A stretch of DNA of 64,000 bases, from IMG/VR virus record IMGVR_UViG_3300031787_000001, positions 62,001 to 126,000 of that record; one strand, given 5' to 3'. Numbering within the stretch: the first letter of the stretch is position 1; every line of letters begins with the position of its first letter. Position numbers and translations under genes: made by a program. Of this stretch, positions 18,265 to 62,495 are shown in pieces. The notes under the pieces are model-generated. The model worked only from the letters and a program-made list of their open reading frames with translations. It did no database searches and was not told the origin of the DNA.

Positions 18265-19323
18265 ATGAATAAAAATAAAGTACTTTTCATCTTAAAAAGA
18301 AAAAATAATTATGATGGAATAAAGGATTCACATGTCGGTATGAGTACCGGATTGTACAATTCGGCATCTTTTATGAACGATATGTTAAATGATTCAGGTA
18401 TTGAGTCCCATATTTCAGTCGTGATTGATAATAATTGTATTGATAGGGAAGTTACAAAATACAAACCAACACATGTTATTATTGAGGCACTTTGGGTTGT
18501 ACCGTCTAAATTTTATGTTCTATGTAAACTACACCCAAAGGTAAAATGGATAATTAGATTACATAGTGAAATACCATTTTTAGCAAATGAAGGTATGGCA
18601 TTAGATTGGTTGGGTGATTATATATTTTATGAAAATGTTTATATTGGGACAAATGCACCCAGAGCAACGAGAGAATTGAGAGATTTCATAAAACATAAAG
18701 TGAATTGGTCAAGTAAACAGATAAATGAAAAGATAATTTATCTTCCAAATTTTTATCCTCAAGAATATAAAATAAAAAAATACGATAGAAATAAAGATAC
18801 CATCGATATAGGTTGTTTTGGTGCAATTAGACCAATGAAAAACCATTTAATGCAAGCAATTGCGGCAGTTAAATTTGCTGAAAGTATAGGTAAAAAATTA
18901 AGATTTCATATAAATTCAGGTAGAGTTGAACAAAAAGGAGATGCAGTATATAATAATTTAAAAAGTTTTTTTGCACATTTATCCGATTCAGAACATCAAT
19001 TAATTAACCACTCTTGGGCACCGAGAGAAGATTTTTTGGAAATATGTGGTAAAATGGATATAGGTATGCAGGTTTCATTTTCAGAAACATTTAATATTGT
19101 TGCCGCGGATTTAGTTAGTCAGGGTGTCCCTGTAATTTCCTCGGATGAACTTCCTTGGATCAACCGTATTTTTACCGCAAAACCAACAGAAACAAGAGAT
19201 ATATATTTAAAATTATTGTTAACACATTTATTACCAAAGGTAAATTTGATAACAAACCAATATTTATTAAGGGGTTATACCAATAAGACACGTAAAATTT
19301 GGGTAAATTATTTTAAAAAATGA
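18265..19323 (+). CDS. GT-B fold glycosyltransferase-like protein
   Basis: GCFGAIRPMKN and SFSETFNIVAAD..GVPVI, GT4-type C-terminal motifs. Confidence 0.6.
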   Translation: MNKNKVLFILKRKNNYDGIKDSHVGMSTGLYNSASFMNDMLNDSGIESHISVVIDNNCIDREVTKYKPTHVIIEALWVVPSKFYVLCKLHPKVKWIIRLHSEIPFLANEGMALDWLGDYIFYENVYIGTNAPRATRELRDFIKHKVNWSSKQINEKIIYLPNFYPQEYKIKKYDRNKDTIDIGCFGAIRPMKNHLMQAIAAVKFAESIGKKLRFHINSGRVEQKGDAVYNNLKSFFAHLSDSEHQLINHSWAPREDFLEICGKMDIGMQVSFSETFNIVAADLVSQGVPVISSDELPWINRIFTAKPTETRDIYLKLLLTHLLPKVNLITNQYLLRGYTNKTRKIWVNYFKK

Positions 19324-19628
19324 CAAATAAAAAAGAAAAAAACAATAAAATGAAAAACTATTCAGGAAAAAAGAAAAAAGAAATTATAGAACACAAAACA
19401 AAAGAAAAAAATAAAGATTATTCTGTTATTATTTTTGATTGGGTTGATGGTGTTTTAGTAAAAACAGAAACATTTTTTAAAACAATAGAAGAAGCAAAAG
19501 AATTTGTTGAAACTAAAACAGGAGACATAAAAATATATAACATAGACAAACAAGTAATACATTCTGAAAAAAAAGAAAAGAAATATGCTAAAATAAAAAA
19601 TAAAGAAGATGACGATACTTACGCATAA
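19320..19628 (+). CDS. hypothetical basic protein
   Basis: 102 aa ORF. Confidence 0.5.
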   Translation: MTNKKEKNNKMKNYSGKKKKEIIEHKTKEKNKDYSVIIFDWVDGVLVKTETFFKTIEEAKEFVETKTGDIKIYNIDKQVIHSEKKEKKYAKIKNKEDDDTYA

Positions 19629-19682
19629 TTTTAATAATTAAATGTAACGTAAAAAAAAATCTCTTAAAATTTTAAGAGATTT

Positions 19683-19728
19683 TTTGTTTTAAGGAATATA
19701 TTGTTTATCTTTGTTTTGTTCTTTGACA
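19683..19728 (+). promoter_or_regulatory. Bacteroidota-type promoter followed by boxA-like element
   Basis: TTTG 19683-19686, 19 nt spacer, TATCTTTG 19706-19713, GTTCTTTGACA 19718-19728. Confidence 0.7.
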
Positions 19729-19743
19729 TTTTTGGAAATAGTT

Positions 19744-19832
19744 GCCCCGGTGGTGGAACAGGTAGACACGCAGGACTTAAAATCCTGTGGACCGAAACGT
19801 CCGTGCGGGTTCGATTCCCGCCTGGGGCACCA
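19744..19832 (+). tRNA. tRNA-Leu(UAA)
   Basis: cloverleaf, cagga-cttaaaa-tcctg, long variable arm, CCA encoded. Confidence 0.95.
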
Positions 19833-19869
19833 ATACTATCGTTCTTTGACATATAAGGAGAAACAAATT

Positions 19870-20235
19870 ATGGAAATACTTTTCTTTATTTTAGGAATTA
19901 CTTCCGTGGTGGTTATTGCGACCGCAATAGTTGCTGTGGTAAGTATTGTTAAGGTAACAAAGTTACAAACAAAAGTTAAAGATGGTTTTGATGGTGTTTA
20001 TCATTCAATTGATAATACACATACTTCCATCGATAACACAAAAAGAGATACTCACGATAACATCGGAAGATTAAATGAAGAAGTTAATCGTAGAGTTGAT
20101 AACCTCGAAAGAGAAACCTTCTCACAGTTAGATTCTCGATTAGATAAGTTGGAAACGAAGTTAAAAACTTACGTTCACACTAATGCAACCATGATGAAAC
20201 TTGCATTAGATACACATAAAGCAACATCAAAATAA
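19870..20235 (+). CDS. membrane-anchored coiled-coil protein
   Basis: ATG 19870 with AAGGAG at 19855-19860; N-terminal TM helix; flanked by 19-bp inverted repeat. Confidence 0.7.
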   Translation: MEILFFILGITSVVVIATAIVAVVSIVKVTKLQTKVKDGFDGVYHSIDNTHTSIDNTKRDTHDNIGRLNEEVNRRVDNLERETFSQLDSRLDKLETKLKTYVHTNATMMKLALDTHKATSK

Positions 20236-20391
20236 AATAAAAGTCAAAAGAACGATAGTATTAAGGTTGAACGGGGAATGAAGATTAAGACACCTGTTGG
20301 TGGTTGGTGATTATCTTCGGAGTTGGAACCAACATAGTAATGCCGTTCGTAAAAGAGGATGTCCACTCGACCATCTTCCTCTTTCCTTCTT

Positions 20392-20462
20392 GGTCTCATA
20401 GTTTAAGGGAAAAACGGTAGCCTTCTAAGCTTCTGATCCTAGTTCGAGTCTAGGTGAGACTA
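20392..20462 (+). tRNA. tRNA-Arg(UCU)
   Basis: ggtctca/tgagact acceptor, loop cttctaa. Confidence 0.85.
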
Positions 20463-20683
20463 CAAAGTTCCTGTAGGCCGCGGGATCGTAGTTCCTCTAT
20501 TCCACTGACAAAAGTCAAGAAAAGAGCCAGATCGTAAGCTGGATGGGTTGACAACTTTCCCACTGACTCGGAAAAAAGTTGTAAATTTTAAGCGGGTCCT
20601 CGCTTCCCACGGTTTAATAGTACAAGGATAATGAAGGGAATAATACGACCCCTAAGACCTGCTTTTATTAAAAAAAATAAAAT

Positions 20684-21115
20684 ATGAATTACAAATTAAA
20701 AGAAATGCCCGAAAAAGTATATTGGGCGGAAACAAAACAATTTACAGTTGAAAATGAAAATGGTGAAACATTTGATATTCGAATTGGTGAAAGTTCAAAA
20801 TTTACTGAATATTGGATTTGGAAAGATCCGGGTGGATGGGAAGAAATTGATGATGATGATCTTATGGAGTATATAAATGAACAATTTGCCGATGATGAAT
20901 GGGAATTTGAACTTTCTGCACAAAAAGAAAGAGAAGAAAAAATGGATAAAATTATTGATGAATATATTAAAGAAAATGGTGATCAAATAAAAATAGATGA
21001 ATTAGTGTCTAAAATAAGTAGAGAAAATCTATATCCACGAAATATCACATTTTACGAAGAGTTTTATCACAACTATCATTATGTCAATAAAAAAATAAAA
21101 CAACTTAATAAATAA
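20684..21115 (+). CDS. hypothetical acidic protein
   Basis: 143 aa ORF. Confidence 0.55.
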   Translation: MNYKLKEMPEKVYWAETKQFTVENENGETFDIRIGESSKFTEYWIWKDPGGWEEIDDDDLMEYINEQFADDEWEFELSAQKEREEKMDKIIDEYIKENGDQIKIDELVSKISRENLYPRNITFYEEFYHNYHYVNKKIKQLNK

Positions 21116-21117
21116 AA

Positions 21118-21321
21118 ATGGAAAATTATAGAAAAGTATTAATTTTTGTGATGTGTTTTTTGGTCACATTTATCGGTGGCATTATTGTTACAGAATTATC
21201 CGCCTATCTTTTAACTTTACCAAATACAATTGCAAATATTTTTGGTTATATCATTTTAATCACTACCTTTGTATTGATCCTCTTATTAGGACATAAATTA
21301 GTAAAATCTTTAAACAAATAA
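21118..21321 (+). CDS. small membrane protein (2 TM)
   Basis: two hydrophobic segments. Confidence 0.6.
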   Translation: MENYRKVLIFVMCFLVTFIGGIIVTELSAYLLTLPNTIANIFGYIILITTFVLILLLGHKLVKSLNK

Positions 21322-21332
21322 AAAAAACAGTT

Positions 21333-22277
21333 ATGATTGGAATTATCACATTTACCTTATCGGTAGTAGTATTAGGAATTTTATTCGGAGTATTTAACTT
21401 CAAAAATTATTTGTCAGAACCTGACAAGTACAATAATACAAAAATAAAAGCGAGTGCAGTTATTAAAGCGGTTGTTGTGTTTATTGTATCTATTATCTTG
21501 GCAATCATCAATCCAATTTCAGTTGAACGAATTGATGTTGGACACGTAGGATTAAAAATCAACAACACCGGAGATGAAAAAGGTATCAGTAAGACCACAT
21601 ATGTAACGGGTTGGGTGTTTTATAATAGTTGGTTATCTCGTATTAAGGAGTATCCCGTGACCCAACAACATGTAGATTACGAAGAAACCGCAATCATCAC
21701 AAAAGGTGGGTTCCAAGCGGTAATTAAACCAAGTTTTAACTGGTCTGTGAATCCATCCAATGCCGCTGATATGTATCAAAATCTCAGACAAGATGTTGAT
21801 CAGATTAAAGAAACTTGGTTGAAGAACGCTATTATAGGTGCCGTGAATGATGTTGCCAACTTATATAGTGTCGATTCAATTTTTAATCATCGAGCCGAAT
21901 TTGAATCTGACATTGTAAAAGAATGTAATTTAAGGGTTAGTAAATGGTTTAACGTATCTCAATTAAGAACAAATATTGTTCCTCCAAAAGAGATCACGGA
22001 AGCCATCAACCAAAAGACCAAGGCGGTTCAAGAAGCTCAAGCGGCTATCCAACAAAAGATCGTGGCCGAAGCTCAGGCTTTAACACAGATCGCAAAGGCA
22101 AAAGGTGATAGTGCTCAAGCGGTGATTGCAGCATCCGGTAGGGCTGAAGCGGTGAGAAAAGAACAACAATACTTAACACCGATGTATATTGAGTATATTA
22201 GAGCACAAAGATGGGATGGTAAGTATCCACAAACAATGCTCGGTTCTGGTGGAAATGTGTTGTTAAATTTGAAATAG
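21333..22277 (+). CDS. SPFH/band-7 (prohibitin-like) membrane protein
   Basis: two N-terminal TMs, RIDVGHVG, Ala-rich coiled coil, C-terminal WDGKYP. Confidence 0.85.
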   Translation: MIGIITFTLSVVVLGILFGVFNFKNYLSEPDKYNNTKIKASAVIKAVVVFIVSIILAIINPISVERIDVGHVGLKINNTGDEKGISKTTYVTGWVFYNSWLSRIKEYPVTQQHVDYEETAIITKGGFQAVIKPSFNWSVNPSNAADMYQNLRQDVDQIKETWLKNAIIGAVNDVANLYSVDSIFNHRAEFESDIVKECNLRVSKWFNVSQLRTNIVPPKEITEAINQKTKAVQEAQAAIQQKIVAEAQALTQIAKAKGDSAQAVIAASGRAEAVRKEQQYLTPMYIEYIRAQRWDGKYPQTMLGSGGNVLLNLK

Positions 22278-22284
22278 AATATTA

Positions 22285-22487
22285 AGTCAGGTGGCGGAAT
22301 AGAATGTAATGATGATTTGGACGATTAGTCGACACGTAATCACGTGACTATTTCTATCCTTATCAGATGTTGAATCATCGAATCTTACATTCTTTGGTAG
22401 ACGATAATCACGGAAACCTAATGAGGTAGAGAACGCAAGTGAGAGGTATCTGCGGATACCGTACGGGTTCGAATCCTGTCCTGACTA
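22285..22487 (+). ncRNA. tRNA-Leu-like RNA with ~93 nt D-loop hairpin insertion and remodelled anticodon arm
   Basis: acceptor agtcagg/cctgact; D motif tggcggaat...tggtagacg split by agaatgtaa...ttacattct; T arm acggg-ttcgaat-cctgt. Confidence 0.7.
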
Positions 22488-22501
22488 CAATTTTGATATT
22501 T

Positions 22502-23062
22502 ATGGGAATGTTAAGAAAAATAAAATATTGGTTTGAATACGAAGGAAGATATCTTCACAAAGATTTTATTAAAGGTGTAAAAAATCTGTGGAAATGGTTT
22601 CCAACTATTTGGAAAGATAGAGAACATGACTATCATTTTATTTTAGTTCTTCTTGAAAAGAAACTTAATTTTCAATCAAAATATATTGGTTATAAAAATA
22701 GACATTCAGAAGCAACTAGAGATTCTGAACGTATGATGACATGTGTTCGTCTTATACAAAAAATAAAAGAAGATTACTATAATACGGAATATGTGGATTA
22801 TCAAAAAAGTGAATTTCATTTTGATCCCATTCCCGATAGACCTACCCACAAACAACTTCGTATTGAGGAAATTTCAGATAATTTTGATGATTATTTTAAA
22901 ATATATCCTCGTATCTATAAAAAAGTTTTTAATGAACTTGATGTGGATCAAAGAAACTCAAAAAGAATTATTGCTATTCGTATGAGTTGGGAAAATCACA
23001 ACAGAGCAAAAAAACTTTTATTTAAAATGATGGAAAATCATATCGAGTCTTGGTGGGATTGA
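22502..23062 (+). CDS. hypothetical protein
   Basis: Trp-rich ORF (NLWKWFPTIWKDR...ESWWD); start moved to ATG 22502 after the tRNA-like RNA. Confidence 0.65.
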   Translation: MGMLRKIKYWFEYEGRYLHKDFIKGVKNLWKWFPTIWKDREHDYHFILVLLEKKLNFQSKYIGYKNRHSEATRDSERMMTCVRLIQKIKEDYYNTEYVDYQKSEFHFDPIPDRPTHKQLRIEEISDNFDDYFKIYPRIYKKVFNELDVDQRNSKRIIAIRMSWENHNRAKKLLFKMMENHIESWWD

Positions 23063-23099
23063 TTTTTTTTCTTATATTATATAAAATAAAACATAAATT

Positions 23100-23345
23100 A
23101 TGAAATGTATCAAATCAATTAAGTCAACTAAAAACACCGAAATCGGGGTAATTAAAAGAATTGACGACAAAGAAGCAGAATCAATGGTTAAATCAGGTTA
23201 TTGGAAATATGTTCCTAAATCTGAATTTAAAATTAAAAAAGTAAAAGAAGATGAAACATTAAGGGAACAATATCCCGCCAATGTTGAAGGATCAAAAGAA
23301 TTTAACAAGGCAAATAAAAAAAATAATAAAAAAGTTTCGAAATAA
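23100..23345 (+). CDS. hypothetical basic protein
   Basis: 81 aa ORF. Confidence 0.55.
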   Translation: MKCIKSIKSTKNTEIGVIKRIDDKEAESMVKSGYWKYVPKSEFKIKKVKEDETLREQYPANVEGSKEFNKANKKNNKKVSK

Positions 23346-23394
23346 TTTTTTTATTATTTCAAATTTACATATATTTGCATATATTTATAAGACA

Positions 23395-23487
23395 ATGACA
23401 AACTTGTTTAACATACTAACGATAGAGAATACACCAAATAATGGTGGTGGGTATGATGTGCCAGTATACAAACAAGTTCGGAGTTAA
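23395..23487 (+). CDS. leader peptide 1 (30 aa, MTNLFNILTIENTPNNGGGYDVPVYKQVRS) of tRNA array 1
   Basis: codons 6-25 all read by array-1 tRNAs; preceded by TATATTTG (23370-23377) and TATTTATA (23382-23389); followed by terminator. Confidence 0.8.
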   Translation: MTNLFNILTIENTPNNGGGYDVPVYKQVRS

Positions 23488-23547
23488 AAAAATTTATTAA
23501 AACAAAATAAACATAAACCCGAACACAAAAAGTTCGGGTTTTTTTTG
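23401..23547 (+). promoter_or_regulatory. attenuator 1 (1:2, antiterminator and terminator helices)
   Basis: aacttgttt (23401-09) pairs aaacaagtt (23470-78); gttcggagtt (23476-85) pairs aacccgaac (23516-24); terminator aaacccgaac/gttcgggttt plus U-run. Confidence 0.8.
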
Positions 23548-23568
23548 TTAATAGATCTTTGAAATAAT

Positions 23569-23642
23569 CGGGATGTAGTTCAGTCCGGTAGAATGCTTGG
23601 TTTGGGACCAAGATGTCGTAGGTTCGAATCCTGCCATCCCGA
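23569..23642 (+). tRNA. tRNA-Pro(UGG)
   Basis: cttgg-tttggga-ccaag. Confidence 0.93.
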
Positions 23643-23648
23643 CATAAT

Positions 23649-23720
23649 GTCTTCTTAGCTCAACGGTAGAGCAATTGGCTGTTAACCAATAGGTTTTAGG
23701 TTCGAATCCTAAAGAGGACG
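23649..23720 (+). tRNA. tRNA-Asn(GUU)
   Basis: attgg-ctgttaa-ccaat. Confidence 0.93.
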
Positions 23721-23725
23721 CAATC

Positions 23726-23807
23726 GCCCCGATGGTGGAATTGGTAGTCACGGCAGACTTAGGATCTGTTGCCTTATGGTGTGAGAGTTCGAGTCTCTCT
23801 TGGGGTA
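23726..23807 (+). tRNA. tRNA-Leu(UAG)
   Basis: gcaga-cttagga-tctgt, variable arm. Confidence 0.92.
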
Positions 23808-23816
23808 CATTAAATT

Positions 23817-23889
23817 GGCCGATTAGTTCAGCAGGTTAGAATGCGTGACTTGTAATCATGAGACGACAGTTCGATTCTGTCATTGGCCT
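23817..23889 (+). tRNA. tRNA-Thr(UGU)
   Basis: cgtga-cttgtaa-tcatg. Confidence 0.9.
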
Positions 23890-23894
23890 CATAA

Positions 23895-23968
23895 GCGGAT
23901 TTCGCCTAGTTGGCATGGCACCACACTTCCACTGTGGAATAGGGTCGGTTCGAGACCGTCAATCCGCT
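23895..23968 (+). tRNA. tRNA-Gly(UCC)
   Basis: ccaca-cttccac-tgtgg, U73. Confidence 0.88.
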
Positions 23969-24014
23969 CAGAATTTTTTTTATTCAAATATATTTTGTAT
24001 GTTTGAATTTGTAA

Positions 24015-24097
24015 GGTGTAGTTGAGCAATTGGTTGGCTCGCCGGACTGTAAATCCGGTCCCTTCGGGGCTTGTAGGTTCGAGTCCTACCTACACCA
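24015..24097 (+). tRNA. tRNA-Tyr(GUA)
   Basis: ccgga-ctgtaaa-tccgg, variable arm. Confidence 0.92.
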
Positions 24098-24103
24098 CAA
24101 ATT

Positions 24104-24175
24104 GCCGCTGTCGTCTAACGGTTAGGACGCGTCCCTTTCACGGACAAAATGCGAGTTCGATTCTCGTCGGTGGTA
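24104..24175 (+). tRNA. tRNA-Glu(UUC)
   Basis: gtcc-ctttcac-ggac. Confidence 0.9.
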
Positions 24176-24180
24176 CGATT

Positions 24181-24252
24181 GGTCTCATAGTTAATCGGCT
24201 ATAATATTGCCCTGTCACGGCAAAGTGCCGGGTTCGATTCCCGGTGGGACCG
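24181..24252 (+). tRNA. tRNA-Asp(GUC)
   Basis: ttgcc-ctgtcac-ggcaa. Confidence 0.92.
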
Positions 24253-24301
24253 CAAACTTCAGGAGTAATTAACCTGAAGATGGAAGGTTCGAAACTTTCG
24301 A

Positions 24302-24403
24302 TTGGCTATGGTGTAATGGGCACACTGGTCCCGTGATTGGCTCGGTTATCGTCGAGTTTCAGTCGGGACCGGGGGATTCAGGTTCAATTCCTGATTGGTC
24401 AGC
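24302..24403 (+). ncRNA. tRNA-like RNA with anticodon arm extended into a long hairpin
   Basis: D arm gtgt/acac; stem ggtccc/gggacc enclosing ~32 nt hairpin; T arm tcagg-ttcaatt-cctga. Confidence 0.6.
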
Positions 24404-24408
24404 AAAAT

Positions 24409-24482
24409 GGACCCTTAGCTCAGTAGGTTAGAGCAAATGACTCATAATCATTAGGTGCACGGTTCGAGCCCGTGAGGGTCCA
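24409..24482 (+). tRNA. tRNA(CAU), most likely Ile2 (lysidine, reads AUA)
   Basis: aatga-ctcataa-tcatt; GGACCCU acceptor resembles Ile2; leader 1 uses ATA codons. Confidence 0.8.
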
Positions 24483-24487
24483 CATTT

Positions 24488-24559
24488 AGTCCTTTAGCTT
24501 AGTGGGAAAGCGGTTGTCTTACATGCAACATAGAGTGTGTTCGATTCACACAGGGACTA
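24488..24559 (+). tRNA. tRNA-Val(UAC)
   Basis: gttgt-cttacat-gcaac. Confidence 0.88.
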
Positions 24560-24667
24560 CCCCCGATATGTATGTGTAAGCAAGAAGCATATCATCAGTT
24601 GGGATCTTACAGTCCACGAACTGGGGTCCGGTGGGAACCGGGATGAGAGTACCCGAACCTCTCAAAC

Positions 24668-24739
24668 GCAGATATAGCACAATGGTTAGTGTTCGGCCTT
24701 GCCAAGGCTGAGATGCCAGTTCGAATCTGACTATCTGCT
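24668..24739 (+). tRNA. tRNA-Gly(GCC)
   Basis: cggcc-ttgccaa-ggctg. Confidence 0.9.
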
Positions 24740-24744
24740 CAAAT

Positions 24745-24894
24745 TGTACTGTGGTGAAATTGGCAGACACCCCCACTCGTCTCGTGGGCGTCGACAACGA
24801 AATAGGTAAATGGATAAGGGTTGACCACAAGCTAGCTAGCATATTTGTCCTTTACCGAATCGCGACATAGACGGTTCGAATCCTCTCGGTACAG
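24745..24894 (+). ncRNA. tRNA-like RNA with Leu-type D arm and ~80 nt variable-arm hairpin
   Basis: acceptor tgtactg/cggtaca; D arm ggtgaaattggcagacac; arm cccac-tcgtctc-gtggg lacking U33; T loop ttcgaat. Confidence 0.65.
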
Positions 24895-24923
24895 CATATA
24901 TTTTTGACAAATAAAAATAGTTT

Positions 24924-25163
24924 ATGACGATCTTAATCGGCATCAATGAATTAGAAGAAGAATTTCAAATACCGTGGAAGATGGGATTAGTTAATCATTT
25001 GGTCATTGATTACGCAGACAACGCAATCTATGGTACATTTGAGAAAAAAGAAGTAATTATTTTTAGGTTCAAAAAATATGGTTGGGTTTGTGATAATAGA
25101 TACAATTTATACACACTATCAAGTGGTGAGGCAGGTATCATGATTAACATGAATTCAACATAA
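24924..25163 (+). CDS. hypothetical protein
   Basis: 79 aa ORF between tRNA arrays. Confidence 0.5.
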   Translation: MTILIGINELEEEFQIPWKMGLVNHLVIDYADNAIYGTFEKKEVIIFRFKKYGWVCDNRYNLYTLSSGEAGIMINMNST

Positions 25164-25187
25164 AATATTTATTAATAACAACATGTT

Positions 25188-25649
25188 ATGAGAAAATTTA
25201 AAACATTATTCGGAATTGAGATTGATAATCTTGCTGAATATATTAAAGAATATATTTCAACAAGAGAAAATGTGGAGATATTAGTTGGCGCCGATTCTCA
25301 AAATTATAGTAATAGAAAAACTATATATGGAGTTGTTATTGCCTTATACACAAAAGGTAAAGGTGCACATGTTTTGTGTTCAAGAGATACTGTTCCAATT
25401 GAGAGAAACACATCAACCAGATTACTTACTGAAGTTTGGAAATCAATTGAGACCGCAGAATTTTTAAAAGAAAATGGTTTACCAAAACCATTATGGATTG
25501 ATATTGACTTAAATCCTGATCCGAAATTTAAATCAAATACCGTATTAAGACAAGCGGTTGGTCTTGTTGAAGGTATGGGTTATCAAGTTAGATATAAACA
25601 ATTAGGTGCTATGGTAACATACGCCGCAAATCACTTAGTTAGAAATTAA
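25188..25649 (+). CDS. RNase H-like YkuK (DUF458) family protein
   Basis: LVGADSQ, RLLTEVWKSIE, IDIDLN, YAANHL. Confidence 0.75.
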   Translation: MRKFKTLFGIEIDNLAEYIKEYISTRENVEILVGADSQNYSNRKTIYGVVIALYTKGKGAHVLCSRDTVPIERNTSTRLLTEVWKSIETAEFLKENGLPKPLWIDIDLNPDPKFKSNTVLRQAVGLVEGMGYQVRYKQLGAMVTYAANHLVRN

Positions 25650-25661
25650 ATTATACTTTTC

Positions 25662-25692
25662 TTTGTTTTTACAATATTTATTATTATCTTTG
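25662..25692 (+). promoter_or_regulatory. Bacteroidota-type promoter for leader 2/array 2
   Basis: TTTG 25662-25665, 19 nt, TATCTTTG 25685-25692. Confidence 0.72.
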
Positions 25693-25714
25693 TAAAACAA
25701 AAGATTAAAAAAAT

Positions 25715-25878
25715 AAATTCGATGAAACAGTTCAAACATATTATGTCGTTTATTAGTTGTTCAAAATGGGCAAGTCAGCGTCATATCCGTATGTCCCGAT
25801 CTGTTTGTATGAATTTGTGTTAAAATATTTTAATAAGTAATTCAAAAAAACCTCGGGACAAAATCTCGAGGTTTTTTG
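25715..25878 (+). promoter_or_regulatory. attenuator 2 (antiterminator/terminator)
   Basis: tgtcccga (25792-99) is the exact complement of tcgggaca (25853-60); terminator cctcggga/tctcgagg plus U6; aaacag (25725-30) pairs ctgttt (25801-06) and aaattc (25715-20) pairs gaattt (25811-16). Confidence 0.82.
25722..25823 (+). CDS. leader peptide 2 (33 aa, MKQFKHIMSFISCSKWASQRHIRMSRSVCMNLC) of tRNA array 2
   Basis: codons 1-27 all fall in codon families read by array-2 tRNAs; not in ORF track because <60 aa. Confidence 0.82.
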   Translation: MKQFKHIMSFISCSKWASQRHIRMSRSVCMNLC

Positions 25879-25884
25879 TTTTAT

Positions 25885-25957
25885 GGGCTGTCATGTTCCA
25901 AGGCTGGCGAAGGACCCTTGCAAGGTCTTTGGGAGATTTCGATTATCTCACGGTCCA
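25885..25957 (+). tRNA. tRNA-Ala(UGC), atypical D arm
   Basis: G3.U70 acceptor, ggacc-cttgcaa-ggtct. Confidence 0.85.
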
Positions 25958-25963
25958 CATAAT

Positions 25964-26037
25964 GTTCGGGTAGATCAATTGGTGAGATCATTCGCCTGAT
26001 ACGCGAAAGGTTGTAGGTTCGAGTCCTACTCCGAACA
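25964..26037 (+). tRNA. tRNA-Ile(GAU)
   Basis: ttcgc-ctgatac-gcgaa. Confidence 0.92.
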
Positions 26038-26042
26038 CGAAT

Positions 26043-26115
26043 GGTACACAAGCTAACTTAGTAGAAGCATTGGACTGAAAATCCAAGGGACTTGGAGCGT
26101 AACCAAGGTGTACCA
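26043..26115 (+). tRNA. tRNA-Phe(GAA), non-canonical D and T loops
   Basis: ttgga-ctgaaaa-tccaa; T loop agcgtaa. Confidence 0.8.
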
Positions 26116-26124
26116 CAAACATAT

Positions 26125-26198
26125 TCCCTCGTAACTCAATTGGCTAGAGTACCACACTTTTAATGTGGGAGTTTCGAGTTCGAATCTCGACGGGGGAA
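26125..26198 (+). tRNA. tRNA-Lys(UUU)
   Basis: ccaca-cttttaa-tgtgg. Confidence 0.92.
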
Positions 26199-26202
26199 CA
26201 AT

Positions 26203-26274
26203 GGTCGGATGGCCGAGTGGATTAGGTGGAGGTCTGCAAAACCTCTTACGTCAGTTCGATTCTGACTCCGACCT
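26203..26274 (+). tRNA. tRNA-Cys(GCA)
   Basis: gaggt-ctgcaaa-acctc, U73. Confidence 0.93.
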
Positions 26275-26281
26275 CAAATAC

Positions 26282-26354
26282 ACGGGTGTGGTGAAATTGG
26301 TTATCATTTCGGTCTCCAAAACCGACGTTTCAGATTCGAATTCTGACATCCGTG
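26282..26354 (+). tRNA. tRNA-Trp(CCA)
   Basis: tcggt-ctccaaa-accga. Confidence 0.92.
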
Positions 26355-26358
26355 CAAT

Positions 26359-26431
26359 GGTTCTATGGTGTAATGGATTAGCACACGAAGCTACGGACTT
26401 CGGAGTTTGGGTTCGAGTCCTAATAGAACCA
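26359..26431 (+). tRNA. tRNA-Arg(ACG)
   Basis: cgaag-ctacgga-cttcg. Confidence 0.9.
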
Positions 26432-26436
26432 CATAT

Positions 26437-26508
26437 TGTTCCGTGATGTAATGGTTAGCATACAAGAATTTGACTCTTGTAGTATAGGTTCGAGTCCTAT
26501 CGGAACAT
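26437..26508 (+). tRNA. tRNA-Gln(UUG)
   Basis: caaga-atttgac-tcttg, U1-A72. Confidence 0.88.
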
Positions 26509-26514
26509 CATAAA

Positions 26515-26597
26515 GGAGAGGTCGTATAGTGGTTTAGTACAGTAGTCTTGAAAACTACCGAGTTTAGGCTCCGTGGGTTCGAATCCCACCCTCTCCG
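26515..26597 (+). tRNA. tRNA-Ser(UGA)
   Basis: gtagt-cttgaaa-actac, variable arm, G73. Confidence 0.92.
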
Positions 26598-26602
26598 CAT
26601 AT

Positions 26603-26680
26603 GGTGGCCTGAGATGGGTTGGTTACATCGTCAGATTGTGGCTCTGAAGAACACGGGTTCGACTCCCGTAGGTCACACCA
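26603..26680 (+). tRNA. tRNA-His(GUG)
   Basis: tcaga-ttgtggc-tctga, G-1, CCA encoded. Confidence 0.88.
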
Positions 26681-26683
26681 AAA

Positions 26684-26772
26684 GGAGAGTAAACTACGAC
26701 GGTGAGTAGACATGCCTGCTAAGCATTGTGTTCGTTAATTCGGATGAGGTTCGATCCCTCTACTCTCCGCCA
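26684..26772 (+). tRNA. tRNA-Ser(GCU)
   Basis: loop ctgctaa, variable arm, GCCA end. Confidence 0.85.
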
Positions 26773-26775
26773 AAT

Positions 26776-26848
26776 GCCGTGGGTTAGTGGAATACGACTA
26801 TCTCTCATAAGGATGGAGAACACAGTTCGAACCTGTGCTACGGTACCA
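26776..26848 (+). tRNA. tRNA-Met(CAU), elongator, atypical D arm
   Basis: tatct-ctcataa-ggatg, T arm cacag/ctgtg, CCA. Confidence 0.7.
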
Positions 26849-26868
26849 AAAAAAAGTTTTAAAAAGAT

Positions 26869-27162
26869 TTTGTATTTTAAAAAAGTATTTATATCTTTGT
26901 AAAAGTTCTTTAAACATCGTGGCGTGGAGAAGTGGTATCTCACTAGGCTCATAACCTAGGGACCGTTGGTTCGAATCCAACCGCCGCAACAAAAAAGTTT
27001 TAAAAAGATTTTGTTTTTTGAAAAACTCTTTTTATATTTGTAAAACAATTCGGTAATACACACCGAAAAAGTTCTTAAAAAAAAAGTTTGACAAAAATTT
27101 GGAAAGTTGAAAAACACTTCTTATCTTTGTAAAACAATCGGAAACGATAAAGTTCTTTGAAA
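26869..27162 (+). promoter_or_regulatory. three tandem, mutually similar Bacteroidota-type promoters with boxA-like elements
   Basis: TTTG/TAnnTTTG pairs at 26869/26892, 27010/27033, 27098/27122; GTTCTTTRAA at 26905 and 27152. Confidence 0.75.
26918..26989 (+). tRNA. initiator tRNA-fMet(CAU)
   Basis: C1:A72 mismatch, ctagg-ctcataa-cctag. Confidence 0.88.
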
Positions 27163-27164
27163 AT

Positions 27165-27965
27165 ATTGGGCGGTCTATAGTCCATAAAATAAACCATGAA
27201 AGTGGTATAAAGTGGAATACCTTGGTTTTGGTATTCTGCGGCTTGGGTAACCGAGCTCGAGTAGACAAACGAGATATCGTCTGACCTTTAGTACTGAGGG
27301 TAACACTGTAGGGAAAGTGGTTGGGCGATCAAGCGATGTGGGTCGTTTGGTTGAGGTGGGAACACCAATAAGAATAACTCGTAGAATTATTGCAAGAAAT
27401 GTTGTTATCCGACTTCATAATTGCGTTTTTCAATATTATGGTTGTCTTAAAACCGAAAGGTATGTTAGTGTACAGGTGGTGCTGTTATTAACCTTAACCT
27501 TAGCCTACCAAGGCATGAGTTATGAAGATGAGCAAAAATATGGAGGTGGGGACATCTCAGAGGGTAGTTTAGTATTTAGCCGTTCAAAAGATGGCTGAGC
27601 TGGTGACGAACCACTACCTTCACAATCCACAAACCAATAACTTGCATCCATTTAATTGCAAAATTAATAAATCAAGGAAAAGTGTTCGTCAGTTGTGGAT
27701 GACAGGTCACTACATAGTCATGAGTTGTTCATGGCCATGAAGGGTCCCAAGCCCAACATGATTTTCACCAAAGTTCTCTAATCTCGCAAGGATTAATTGG
27801 GGTGGCAACCTCGAAGAGTGATGAGTAATGAGAGAGTGATTCACAACTTAAGGATTGGTTAATCTAATTGACCGTGACTGATTATTACTACTCAAAAGGT
27901 AGTGGATAAGGGAAGAATCAATAATGTCCCAAAGATAATCACCCGAACGTGTAATCTCAGCGTTT
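27165..27965 (+). ncRNA. ~800 nt structured RNA, probably GOLLD
   Basis: ORF-poor, GC-elevated, many hairpins (e.g. gaatacc/ggtattc, gcttgg/ccgagc, ttagccgtt/gatggctga, ctact/agtag); size and tRNA-cluster/phage context fit GOLLD; family assignment not verified. Confidence 0.6.
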
Positions 27966-28031
27966 TATTTTCCTGATTTTTATAAAATCATGGTGGTGGA
28001 GTAATAAAAAGATTTCATGCCGCAAGGCCCC

Positions 28032-61535: not shown

Positions 61536-62495
61536 TTAAGCAACCATGTTACTTATTTTTCTACCTCCCTGTGCGATCAAACTATTACCACTATTTATTC
61601 TGTGACTTACTGCGGATTTAGTTAAATAAACAGGATCTAAATTACCATTTGCAACTTGTAAATTTATTTTTTTTGCAAATTTTTGAAACCAACCCGGTCC
61701 ATTCCAAACACCATAAACAAAATGGAACATTAACGGTGGTGTTGAATTAACTATCTGAATTGCTTTTGGTGATAAATATGATTTACAGTATTGGTCATAC
61801 AATGGTTTCATCATTTTAGGTATTAAAGACATTAATTGAGATTGTAACGGTCCACCGAAATAATTCCATTTCCATTTATTTTTTGCGTTCTGACCATCAA
61901 TTATTGACCAAAACTGTTTACCGGCAGACGTTGTATTGATACTACCTCCCGTTTTTCTATCTATACCAAACATGGTTTCACCCGAACCTGCATATCTTTG
62001 GTCTTTTACTCTACCATCTTTTAACATGTTAGGATGATAATATCCACCCTCAAGTTCTTGTACTACTTTTTGTACAATACCATCAAAATCTGTGGGTATA
62101 TTTTTAAATTTTCCCGAACTAAGTTTTTGAGATCTTGATTTTATTCTCCAATCATCTTTCTCATTTATCTTCTCAATTTCTTCTTTAAGGTATTTTTTTA
62201 TTATATTTTCTAATCTTAGCTCGTTCATTTTTTTTGAATTTTTTATTTTAATTGTACCTATTGATTTTGGAAAAAACTCAGTAGTATCCACGTCATCACC
62301 ATATTTGTTAATTAAAAAAATACCAGTTTTTAATTCACCAATATCCTCTATCCTATAAATTTTATTTTCTTCAACATCAACACCTTCTTTTTGTGGGTAT
62401 CCCACGTATTTTTCATCACCGTTTGAATATATTGGAATTTCATATCCTTTGTATGAAATTTTATCTATTTTTTTAAATTTTGGTTTAAAGAACAT
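61536..62495 (-). CDS. protein with GH108-like lysozyme domain
   Basis: LEGGYYHP...GETMFGID; start placed at ATG 62495. Confidence 0.5.
   Translation of the reverse strand: MFFKPKFKKIDKISYKGYEIPIYSNGDEKYVGYPQKEGVDVEENKIYRIEDIGELKTGIFLINKYGDDVDTTEFFPKSIGTIKIKNSKKMNELRLENIIKKYLKEEIEKINEKDDWRIKSRSQKLSSGKFKNIPTDFDGIVQKVVQELEGGYYHPNMLKDGRVKDQRYAGSGETMFGIDRKTGGSINTTSAGKQFWSIIDGQNAKNKWKWNYFGGPLQSQLMSLIPKMMKPLYDQYCKSYLSPKAIQIVNSTPPLMFHFVYGVWNGPGWFQKFAKKINLQVANGNLDPVYLTKSAVSHRINSGNSLIAQGGRKISNMVA

Follow-up and report, generated by a model that had tools for sequence, protein, structure and literature searches.

The multivalent leader-peptide attenuators of the enterobacterial ilvGMEDA / ilvBN and thr operons appear to be, together with the pheST attenuator of E. 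coli and its pheM leader, the nearest described systems in design to the element reported here. In the ilv and thr systems, a short leader ORF generally lies between promoter and intrinsic terminator, an antiterminator competes for the 5' arm of the terminator, codons for more than one amino acid are sensed (Ile/Val/Leu; Thr/Ile), and stalling gives read-through; the regulated genes encode enzymes of amino-acid biosynthesis, and the leaders seem to use runs of 4-8 regulatory codons for two or three amino acids. The pheST attenuator applies leader-peptide attenuation to a gene of the translation apparatus, probably with feedback through Phe-tRNA availability, but it regulates a synthetase, through a run of Phe codons for a single amino acid, and seems to control no tRNA gene. 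Upstream of the E. coli tRNA-Phe genes themselves, no leader ORF is present before pheV, and only about 106 nt separates dicD from pheU in MG1655. T-box riboswitches also sense tRNA status and switch between terminator and antiterminator upstream of translation-related genes, but they bind uncharged tRNA directly through a specifier codon and the T-box sequence, without translation, sense one tRNA, and regulate synthetase or amino-acid genes. Here we describe a viral element, just before a phage tRNA cluster, in which a 33-codon ORF uses one or a few codons for each tRNA of the cluster, and which is best explained as a ribosome-mediated transcription attenuator of classical logic whose regulated genes are tRNAs. 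No report of leader-peptide control of tRNA genes, in phages or cells, was found in the open-access literature searched.

The window analysed is a 64,000-nucleotide stretch of an IMG/VR virus record (IMGVR_UViG_3300031787_000001, positions 62,001 to 126,000). It is A+T-rich (31% G+C), is identical over the compared stretch to a 286,785-bp IMG/VR viral contig, and carries two tRNA arrays on the + strand and, just downstream, a full-length GOLLD RNA (338 bits). No near relative was found among deposited phage genomes, where only tRNA-sized matches appeared. The features of the locus are as follows.

23370..23541 (+): sister element before array 1, with promoter TATATTTG (23370-77), leader ORF 23395-23487 (MTNLFNILTIENTPNNGGGYDVPVYKQVRS), antiterminator strand agttcgg (23475-81) and terminator 23515-41.
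25662..25692 (+): promoter, consisting of TTTG (25662-65), 19 nt and TATCTTTG (25685-92); the transcript probably starts near 25699, a start site that is inferred, giving an A-rich 5' UTR of about 23 nt with no Shine-Dalgarno sequence.
25722..25823 (+): leader ORF of 33 codons plus TAA, MKQFKHIMSFISCSKWASQRHIRMSRSVCMNLC.
25725..25781 (+): sensor codons 2-20 (KQFKHIMSFISCSKWASQR).
25792..25799 (+): antiterminator 5' strand (tgtcccga), inside codons 24-26.
25803..25851 (+): helper hairpins in the antiterminator loop, one of which contains the stop codon (25821-23); their role is inferred.
25845..25883 (+): intrinsic terminator, with stem core 25851-58 / 25864-71 including one G.U, loop caaaa, then a T tract.
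25885..25958 (+): tRNA-Ala(UGC) with an atypical D arm, the first gene of array 2.
25964..26848 (+): rest of array 2, Ile(gat) Phe Lys Cys Trp Arg(acg) Gln Ser(tga) His Ser(gct) and a CAT tRNA, spaced 2-9 nt apart.

The initial annotation proposed a 33-codon leader with an exact 8-bp antiterminator, and every sequence statement in it was checked and confirmed. The ORF begins with ATG, lies 30 nt after the promoter motif, and has no Pfam or PHROG match. The terminator-like hairpin at 25845-25877 (14 pairs, then a T tract) was the top-ranked site of a terminator scan. The strand tgtcccga (25792-99) is the exact Watson-Crick complement of tcgggaca (25853-60), whereas in the terminator stem G25856 pairs with T25866 as G.U. 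A perfect complement of 8 nt or more to the G+C core arose in 0.56% of 5000 dinucleotide-preserving shuffles of the leader, and the whole leader folds with z = -7.0. The helix proposed to cover the start codon (25713-30 with 25801-18) is in the minimum-energy fold of this phage, but it was not recovered as a conserved structure by RNAalifold in 25 relatives and is specific to this phage.

The claim that the first 27 codons use only array-2 codon families depends on three atypical tRNAs that default ARAGORN and Rfam miss, namely Ala(tgc) 25885-25958, Ser(gct) 26684-26772, which Rfam sees only as a sub-threshold tRNA-Sec match, and a CAT tRNA at 26776-26848. ARAGORN finds all three at a relaxed threshold. 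A cloverleaf appears in the fold of the Ala tRNA, and the same tRNA follows the terminator in relatives. With these three, the first 27 codons are all array-2 amino acids. Against the amino-acid usage of the long ORFs of the window, 29 of the 32 residues after the initiator are in the array-2 set with 14.7 expected (binomial P = 1e-7), and at codon level, with ordinary wobble rules, 27 of 32 are in the set with 11.7 expected (P = 4e-8). Among 342 ATG ORFs of 20-80 codons in all six frames of the window, this ORF ranks first (0.91 in set; next best 0.79). The leader before array 1 has the complementary make-up, with 19 of 22 sensor residues in the array-1 set and all 10 array-1 amino acids present, and the two leaders partition the amino acids as the two arrays do (Fisher 7e-7). 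The two Ile codons of leader 1 are ATA, whereas leader 2 uses ATT and ATC.

To examine these features in relatives, the RNase H-like gene between the arrays (PF04308) was used as a marker and gave 80 loci, here numbered with the prefix L, from IMG/VR contigs of up to about 330 kb (many over 200 kb) at 52-100% identity; a pattern from the leader core gave 41 more. A search of genome contigs with the leader-2 core pattern gave no match, and so no clue to the host. The tRNA arrays of the relatives are rearranged in many ways, which makes them a natural experiment. TA(T)nTTTG and the upstream TTG are nearly invariant in 25 relatives, and the start codon is invariant. A rule that ignores composition, taking the first ATG after the motif TAnnTTTG that lies upstream of a terminator followed by a tRNA, recovers a short ORF in every relative that has the motif, and the stop of each such ORF lies 22-33 nt before the terminator core. 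The motif TTG-N19-TAnnTTTG resembles what is probably the Bacteroidota consensus, but as it also precedes the three leaders of a cyanophage (see below) it may be phage-specific, and we make no claim as to the host.

The covariation expected of an attenuator is present. In 24 distinct relatives of the leader-2 family (25 sequences), 97.6% of antiterminator cells pair and 4 of 7 pairs carry compensatory changes (C-G/U-A/U-G, G-C/A-U/G-U, A-U/G-C). None of 500 shuffles reached the observed score, and sliding the partner by 1-3 columns dropped pairing to 6-55% and removed all compensatory changes. A separate count agreed and added a T-A/A-T exchange at the outermost pair. For the terminator, 99.5% of cells pair and 3 of 8 pairs carry compensatory changes. 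At some positions three partners change together, namely the 5' arm, the 3' arm and the antiterminator strand, as in the relative L090. Further supporting the alternative pairing, leader families with unrelated terminator sequences (CCGAAC, CCTCGGGA, CCCTTAAC, CCCCTAAC, GCCCGGT, GCCCTGG) each carry, 0-21 nt before the stop, a stretch complementary to the 5' arm of their own terminator. Cognate duplexes average -13.2 kcal/mol and non-cognate ones -8.5, and for 23 of 27 leaders the best duplex is with their own class.

The ORF is constrained as codons in its 5' part and as RNA in its 3' part, which is what an attenuator predicts. In the conserved block H-T-M-S-F-(T/I)-I-C-S-K-W-A, 11 of 13 codons vary at the third position, mostly within the codon set of one tRNA (TCA/TCG/TCC, TGT/TGC, AAA/AAG, GCA/GCG, ACA/ACG/ACT). 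In contrast, the antiterminator strand GTC(C/T)CGA is conserved as nucleotides although it is read as M-S-R in the window and as C-L-D in L014. One could suppose that the ORF encodes a small protein with a function of its own, that the hairpin is simply its leaky terminator, and that the match with the tRNA set is incidental; the peptide core is well conserved in the leader-2 family, and leader peptides with functions in trans are known (peTrpL; PMC7298713). We consider this very unlikely, as it does not explain the antiterminator covariation, the same design in leader families with unrelated peptide sequences, the complete coverage of array amino acids, or the nucleotide conservation of the 3' part across different reading frames.

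Interestingly, leader content follows array content. The sensor part was defined objectively as the codons that begin at least 13 nt upstream of the antiterminator strand, which in the window is MKQFKHIMSFISCSKWASQR; all 19 codons after the initiator are read by array-2 tRNAs, and all 11 amino acids of the array are present. Only codons 1-20 can act as sensors; a ribosome on codons 21-31 covers the antiterminator strand itself. Over 21 leaders whose arrays cover fewer than 16 amino acids, the table of amino acid present in the sensor against tRNA present in the array is 192 / 49 / 2 / 156, so that almost every tRNA in an array is represented in its leader, and shuffling arrays among leaders never reached the observed concordance in 20,000 trials (p < 5e-5). 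Some sensor residues are off-list in relatives (49 cells), notably codon 2 (AAA or AGA), and, because the sequences are related, these counts overstate the number of independent events, although the direction of every contrast examined is the same. A stricter definition of arrays (gaps of 250 nt or less) breaks them at inserted endonuclease-like ORFs and weakens the statistics for relatives, while the numbers for the window are the same under both definitions.

The pattern also holds within homologous leaders. In the window, the Glu and Asp tRNAs are in array 1, and leader 1 has E and D while leader 2 has none; in L010, L014 and L046 these tRNAs follow array 2, and there leader 2 reads W-A-D-E-R and leader 1 has no E or D in its sensor part. 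Ser(gct) lies in array 2 of the window, where leader 2 has two AGT codons, whereas in relatives it lies in array 1 and AGT is in leader 1. Gln and Thr codons likewise sit in whichever leader precedes the array holding that tRNA. Isoacceptor choice follows the array as well: AGA goes with Arg(tct) and CGT/CGC with Arg(acg), ATA with Ile(tat) or a CAT tRNA and ATT/ATC with Ile(gat), AGY and TCN codons are likewise distinguished, and TTR and CTN go with the two Leu tRNAs and GGY and GGR with the two Gly tRNAs. Arrays that cover 18-20 amino acids are preceded by leaders of 31-47 residues that contain all 20 (L062, L067, L071, L075), the chance of that coverage being 6e-4 to 2e-2 each.

An independent example exists in a cultured phage. 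The marker protein, which reaches 35% identity or less in cultured phages, has a 31%-identical homologue inside the tRNA region of Leptolyngbya phage Lbo-JY46, and that phage has three units of the same build, each behind a TTTGGTAG-N-TATCTTTG motif. One leader, MKITRQHTQFWFPTGTGLGML, precedes Pro Thr Phe Gln His Arg(acg) Trp; it has 11 consecutive in-set residues, covers 7 of 7 amino acids, has a CGT codon matching Arg(acg), and contains ctgggct, complementary to the terminator arm agcccag. A second leader, of 36 residues with six Cys codons, covers 10 of 10 amino acids of an array that has two Cys tRNAs, while a third, Leu-enriched leader before Leu-Leu matches its array only weakly. The same analysis found nothing convincing near the tRNA genes of Vibrio phage nt-1, Pseudomonas phage Astolliot and Roseobacter phage DSS3P8, or in the region of a 735-kb uncultured phage. 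The device therefore belongs to a lineage and is not common to all phage tRNA arrays.

We suggest the following sequence of events, in which translation of the leader, the direction of the switch and the physiological signal are inferred. Transcription starts at the conserved promoter, and a ribosome translates the leader behind the polymerase. The first 20 codons hold one to three codons for each tRNA species encoded downstream (Ala, Ile, Phe, Lys, Cys, Trp, Arg-ACG, Gln, Ser-UGA, His, Ser-GCU and Met). If every one of these aminoacyl-tRNAs is available, the ribosome runs on over the antiterminator strand to the stop codon and melts the helper hairpins, the terminator forms, and transcription ends 8 nt before the first tRNA. 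If any one is scarce, the ribosome stalls in the sensor part, 25792-99 pairs with 25853-60 as soon as the latter emerges, the terminator cannot form, and the polymerase reads into the array. The exact 13-mer TATCTTTGTAAAA occurs only three times in the window (here, before the initiator tRNA, and at 27122). tRNA-Ala begins 8 nt after the terminator stem, and no promoter motif lies between 25693 and 26892; array 2 can therefore be expressed only by read-through. The phage thus probably makes these tRNAs only when decoding of their own codons is slow, as could happen because host tRNAs are depleted, cleaved or ill-matched to phage codon use.

The isolated terminator is worth -16.8 kcal/mol, the antiterminator hairpin with its internal helper helices (25788-25864) -22.0, and the full leader hairpin -27.3. 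While only the 5' arm of the terminator has emerged, a masked ribosome footprint with its A site on codons 2-20 leaves the antiterminator formed (probability 0.73-0.97), and on codons 22-30 abolishes it. However, in this phage the antiterminator core ends 22 nt before the stop codon, so that a ribosome waiting at the stop would not cover it directly, and the equilibrium model still allows the antiterminator there; termination when all tRNAs are present rests on steric and kinetic arguments. Without any ribosome, the nascent RNA up to 25862 is also predicted to form the antiterminator (0.95). A small hairpin at the stop codon was recovered in relatives by RNAalifold with changes on both sides, though it is only 77% paired on a second alignment. 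Sensitivity may also be low, as each tRNA is represented by only one to three dispersed codons.

Two other readings bear on this model. In the first, the polarity is reversed, so that stalling favours termination, or the hairpins are RNase processing or stability signals for the tRNA precursor. Such precursors need 5' processing, the RNase H-like gene lies just upstream, and modelling does not settle the behaviour at the stop codon. This seems improbable, since the hairpin has the G+C stem and T tract of an intrinsic terminator, the sensor codons lie 13 nt or more upstream of the antiterminator strand in every family, which fits read-through upon stalling and not the reverse, and a processing signal would not require a covarying alternative pairing inside an ORF. 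In the second, the mechanism is the same but the leader reports amino-acid starvation, or general slowing of translation after host shut-off, and the array is switched on as a block whenever translation falters. A stalled ribosome cannot tell a missing tRNA from an uncharged one, leaders with all 20 amino acids would respond to any starvation, and the element reads through in the model with no ribosome at all. Although the two signals cannot be separated by sequence alone, we regard this one as unlikely. Making more tRNA does not relieve amino-acid starvation, a general sensor would not need rare Cys, Trp and His codons kept in place, and feedback through the decoding of the array's own codons is the only reading under which a leader must be rewritten when a tRNA gene moves. 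The signal is more likely the supply of the tRNAs themselves than that of Trp, Cys or His.

With regard to known leader families, weak Rfam matches fall on the terminator regions, His_leader (RF00514) at 25775-25881 and Thr_leader (RF00506) and Leu_leader (RF00512) at 23478-23548, but their scores are about half the gathering thresholds (28.1 vs 49, 26 vs 55 and 25 vs 50 bits; E = 0.1-0.24), and there is no sequence homology. No T-box match was found at E <= 1 in 19000-28000, and the element is built around an ORF. Unlike the his, phe or leu leaders with their runs, the leader holds single or dispersed codons, at most three per tRNA in the sensor; this is a difference of design and not a universal requirement of leader-peptide attenuators, as trpL, for instance, would appear to have two Trp codons. 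What is new here is the target, tRNA genes, and a leader with one to three dispersed codons for each of 10-20 amino acids, chosen at isoacceptor level.

Taken further, it is somewhat more likely than not that a whole lineage of large phages, including a cultured cyanophage, runs its tRNA operons through 'roll-call' leaders, each a short ORF that lists the tRNAs of its operon one codon family at a time, so that a shortage of any single species opens the operon. That would make phage tRNA genes an on-demand repair kit that senses host tRNA depletion, for example by anticodon nucleases or host shut-off, and replaces exactly what is missing, with the leaders being rewritten each time a tRNA gene moves. 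The leader also gives a computational read-out of operon boundaries and points to atypical tRNAs that gene finders miss, as the Ala codon in the leader predicted the aberrant tRNA-Ala. Because the cultured pair Leptolyngbya boryana / Lbo-JY46 carries the same design, the idea is open to test at the bench. Such elements would turn the debate over codon-usage compensation versus escape from tRNA-targeting defence into a direct experiment. The known reach of leader-peptide attenuation would extend from amino-acid and synthetase genes to non-coding RNA genes, and from one to three amino acids to all twenty. How and why phages regulate the tRNA genes they carry is largely unknown, and these elements would show that expression is conditional and is governed by the decoding of the very codons the tRNAs read.

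Three tRNAs in the window, two of which were predicted by the Ala and AGT codons of the leader, are missed by ARAGORN at its default threshold and by the Rfam tRNA model:

25885-25958, tRNA-Ala(UGC) with an aberrant D arm.
26684-26772, tRNA-Ser(GCU).
26776-26848, a CAU tRNA with a 3-bp D stem.

A further tRNA-like call of 95 nt (24309-24403, + strand; Asn-gtt at relaxed threshold) lies in the 156-nt gap inside array 1, and it may be a false positive, a degenerate tRNA or an intron-bearing tRNA. The array-1 CAT tRNA (24409-24483) has C4-G69 and C5-G68, in which it appears to resemble tRNA-Ile2. Leader 1 uses ATA twice and has no internal ATG, while leader 2 has an internal ATG and no ATA, and in relatives with Ile(tat) plus a CAT tRNA, leader 1 starts MM. 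The leaders may thus reveal which CAT tRNAs read ATA.

Other features of the window are the following:

19652-19832 (+), tRNA-Leu(taa) with its own promoter motif (tatctttg, about 19706-13) directly upstream and no leader.
26850-27135 (+), repeated units of about 140 nt (aaaaaagttttaaaaagattttgt ... tat(c/a)tttgtaaaa), each ending in the promoter motif (26892, 27033, 27122).
26892-26990 (+), a CAT tRNA standing alone behind its own exact copy of the promoter TATCTTTGTAAAA, with no leader or terminator.
27560-27963 (+), a full-length GOLLD RNA (Rfam RF02032, 338.5 bits, E = 3e-97).

Of the repeated units, only the first is followed by a tRNA. This CAT tRNA has a C1 x A72 mismatch, a feature that is probably characteristic of initiator tRNAs, and the initiator would then be the one tRNA that a leader ORF cannot sense by stalling. 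The GOLLD RNA lies downstream of array 2 and of a copy of the same promoter 13-mer at 27122. In relatives, tRNA-Leu(taa) and Arg(tct) are the first genes behind leader 1, and there leader 1 contains TTG and AGA codons, whereas the leader-1 sensor part of the window lacks the AGA.

An RNase H-like / DUF458 gene (PF04308, phrog_11311), found in the window at 25188-25649 (+) and in the phage loci L125 (4848-5327; Leptolyngbya phage Lbo-JY46) and L128 (11980-12477), is embedded in or beside tRNA clusters in phages as distant as a cyanophage and a roseophage. In Vibrio phage nt-1 it lies about 4.5 kb beyond the tRNA cluster. The gene may have a role in tRNA maturation.

Several relatives and a 735-kb uncultured phage carry tRNAs with anticodon CUA, called 'Pyl' by ARAGORN (loci L023/L034 at 11029, L024 at 6318, L044 at 8063, L049 at 8048, L050 at 3636, L054 at 9910, L063 at 7605, and L124 at 25503 and 25581). 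These are possible amber suppressors and a hint of TAG recoding in those genomes, but none was found in the window. In relatives (loci L004-L075), the arrays are also interrupted, between tRNA genes, by ORFs of 140–250 aa, and one such ORF is annotated as a homing endonuclease in Lbo-JY46 (L125 3562-4389). These insertions probably drive the reshuffling of tRNA genes that the leaders then track.
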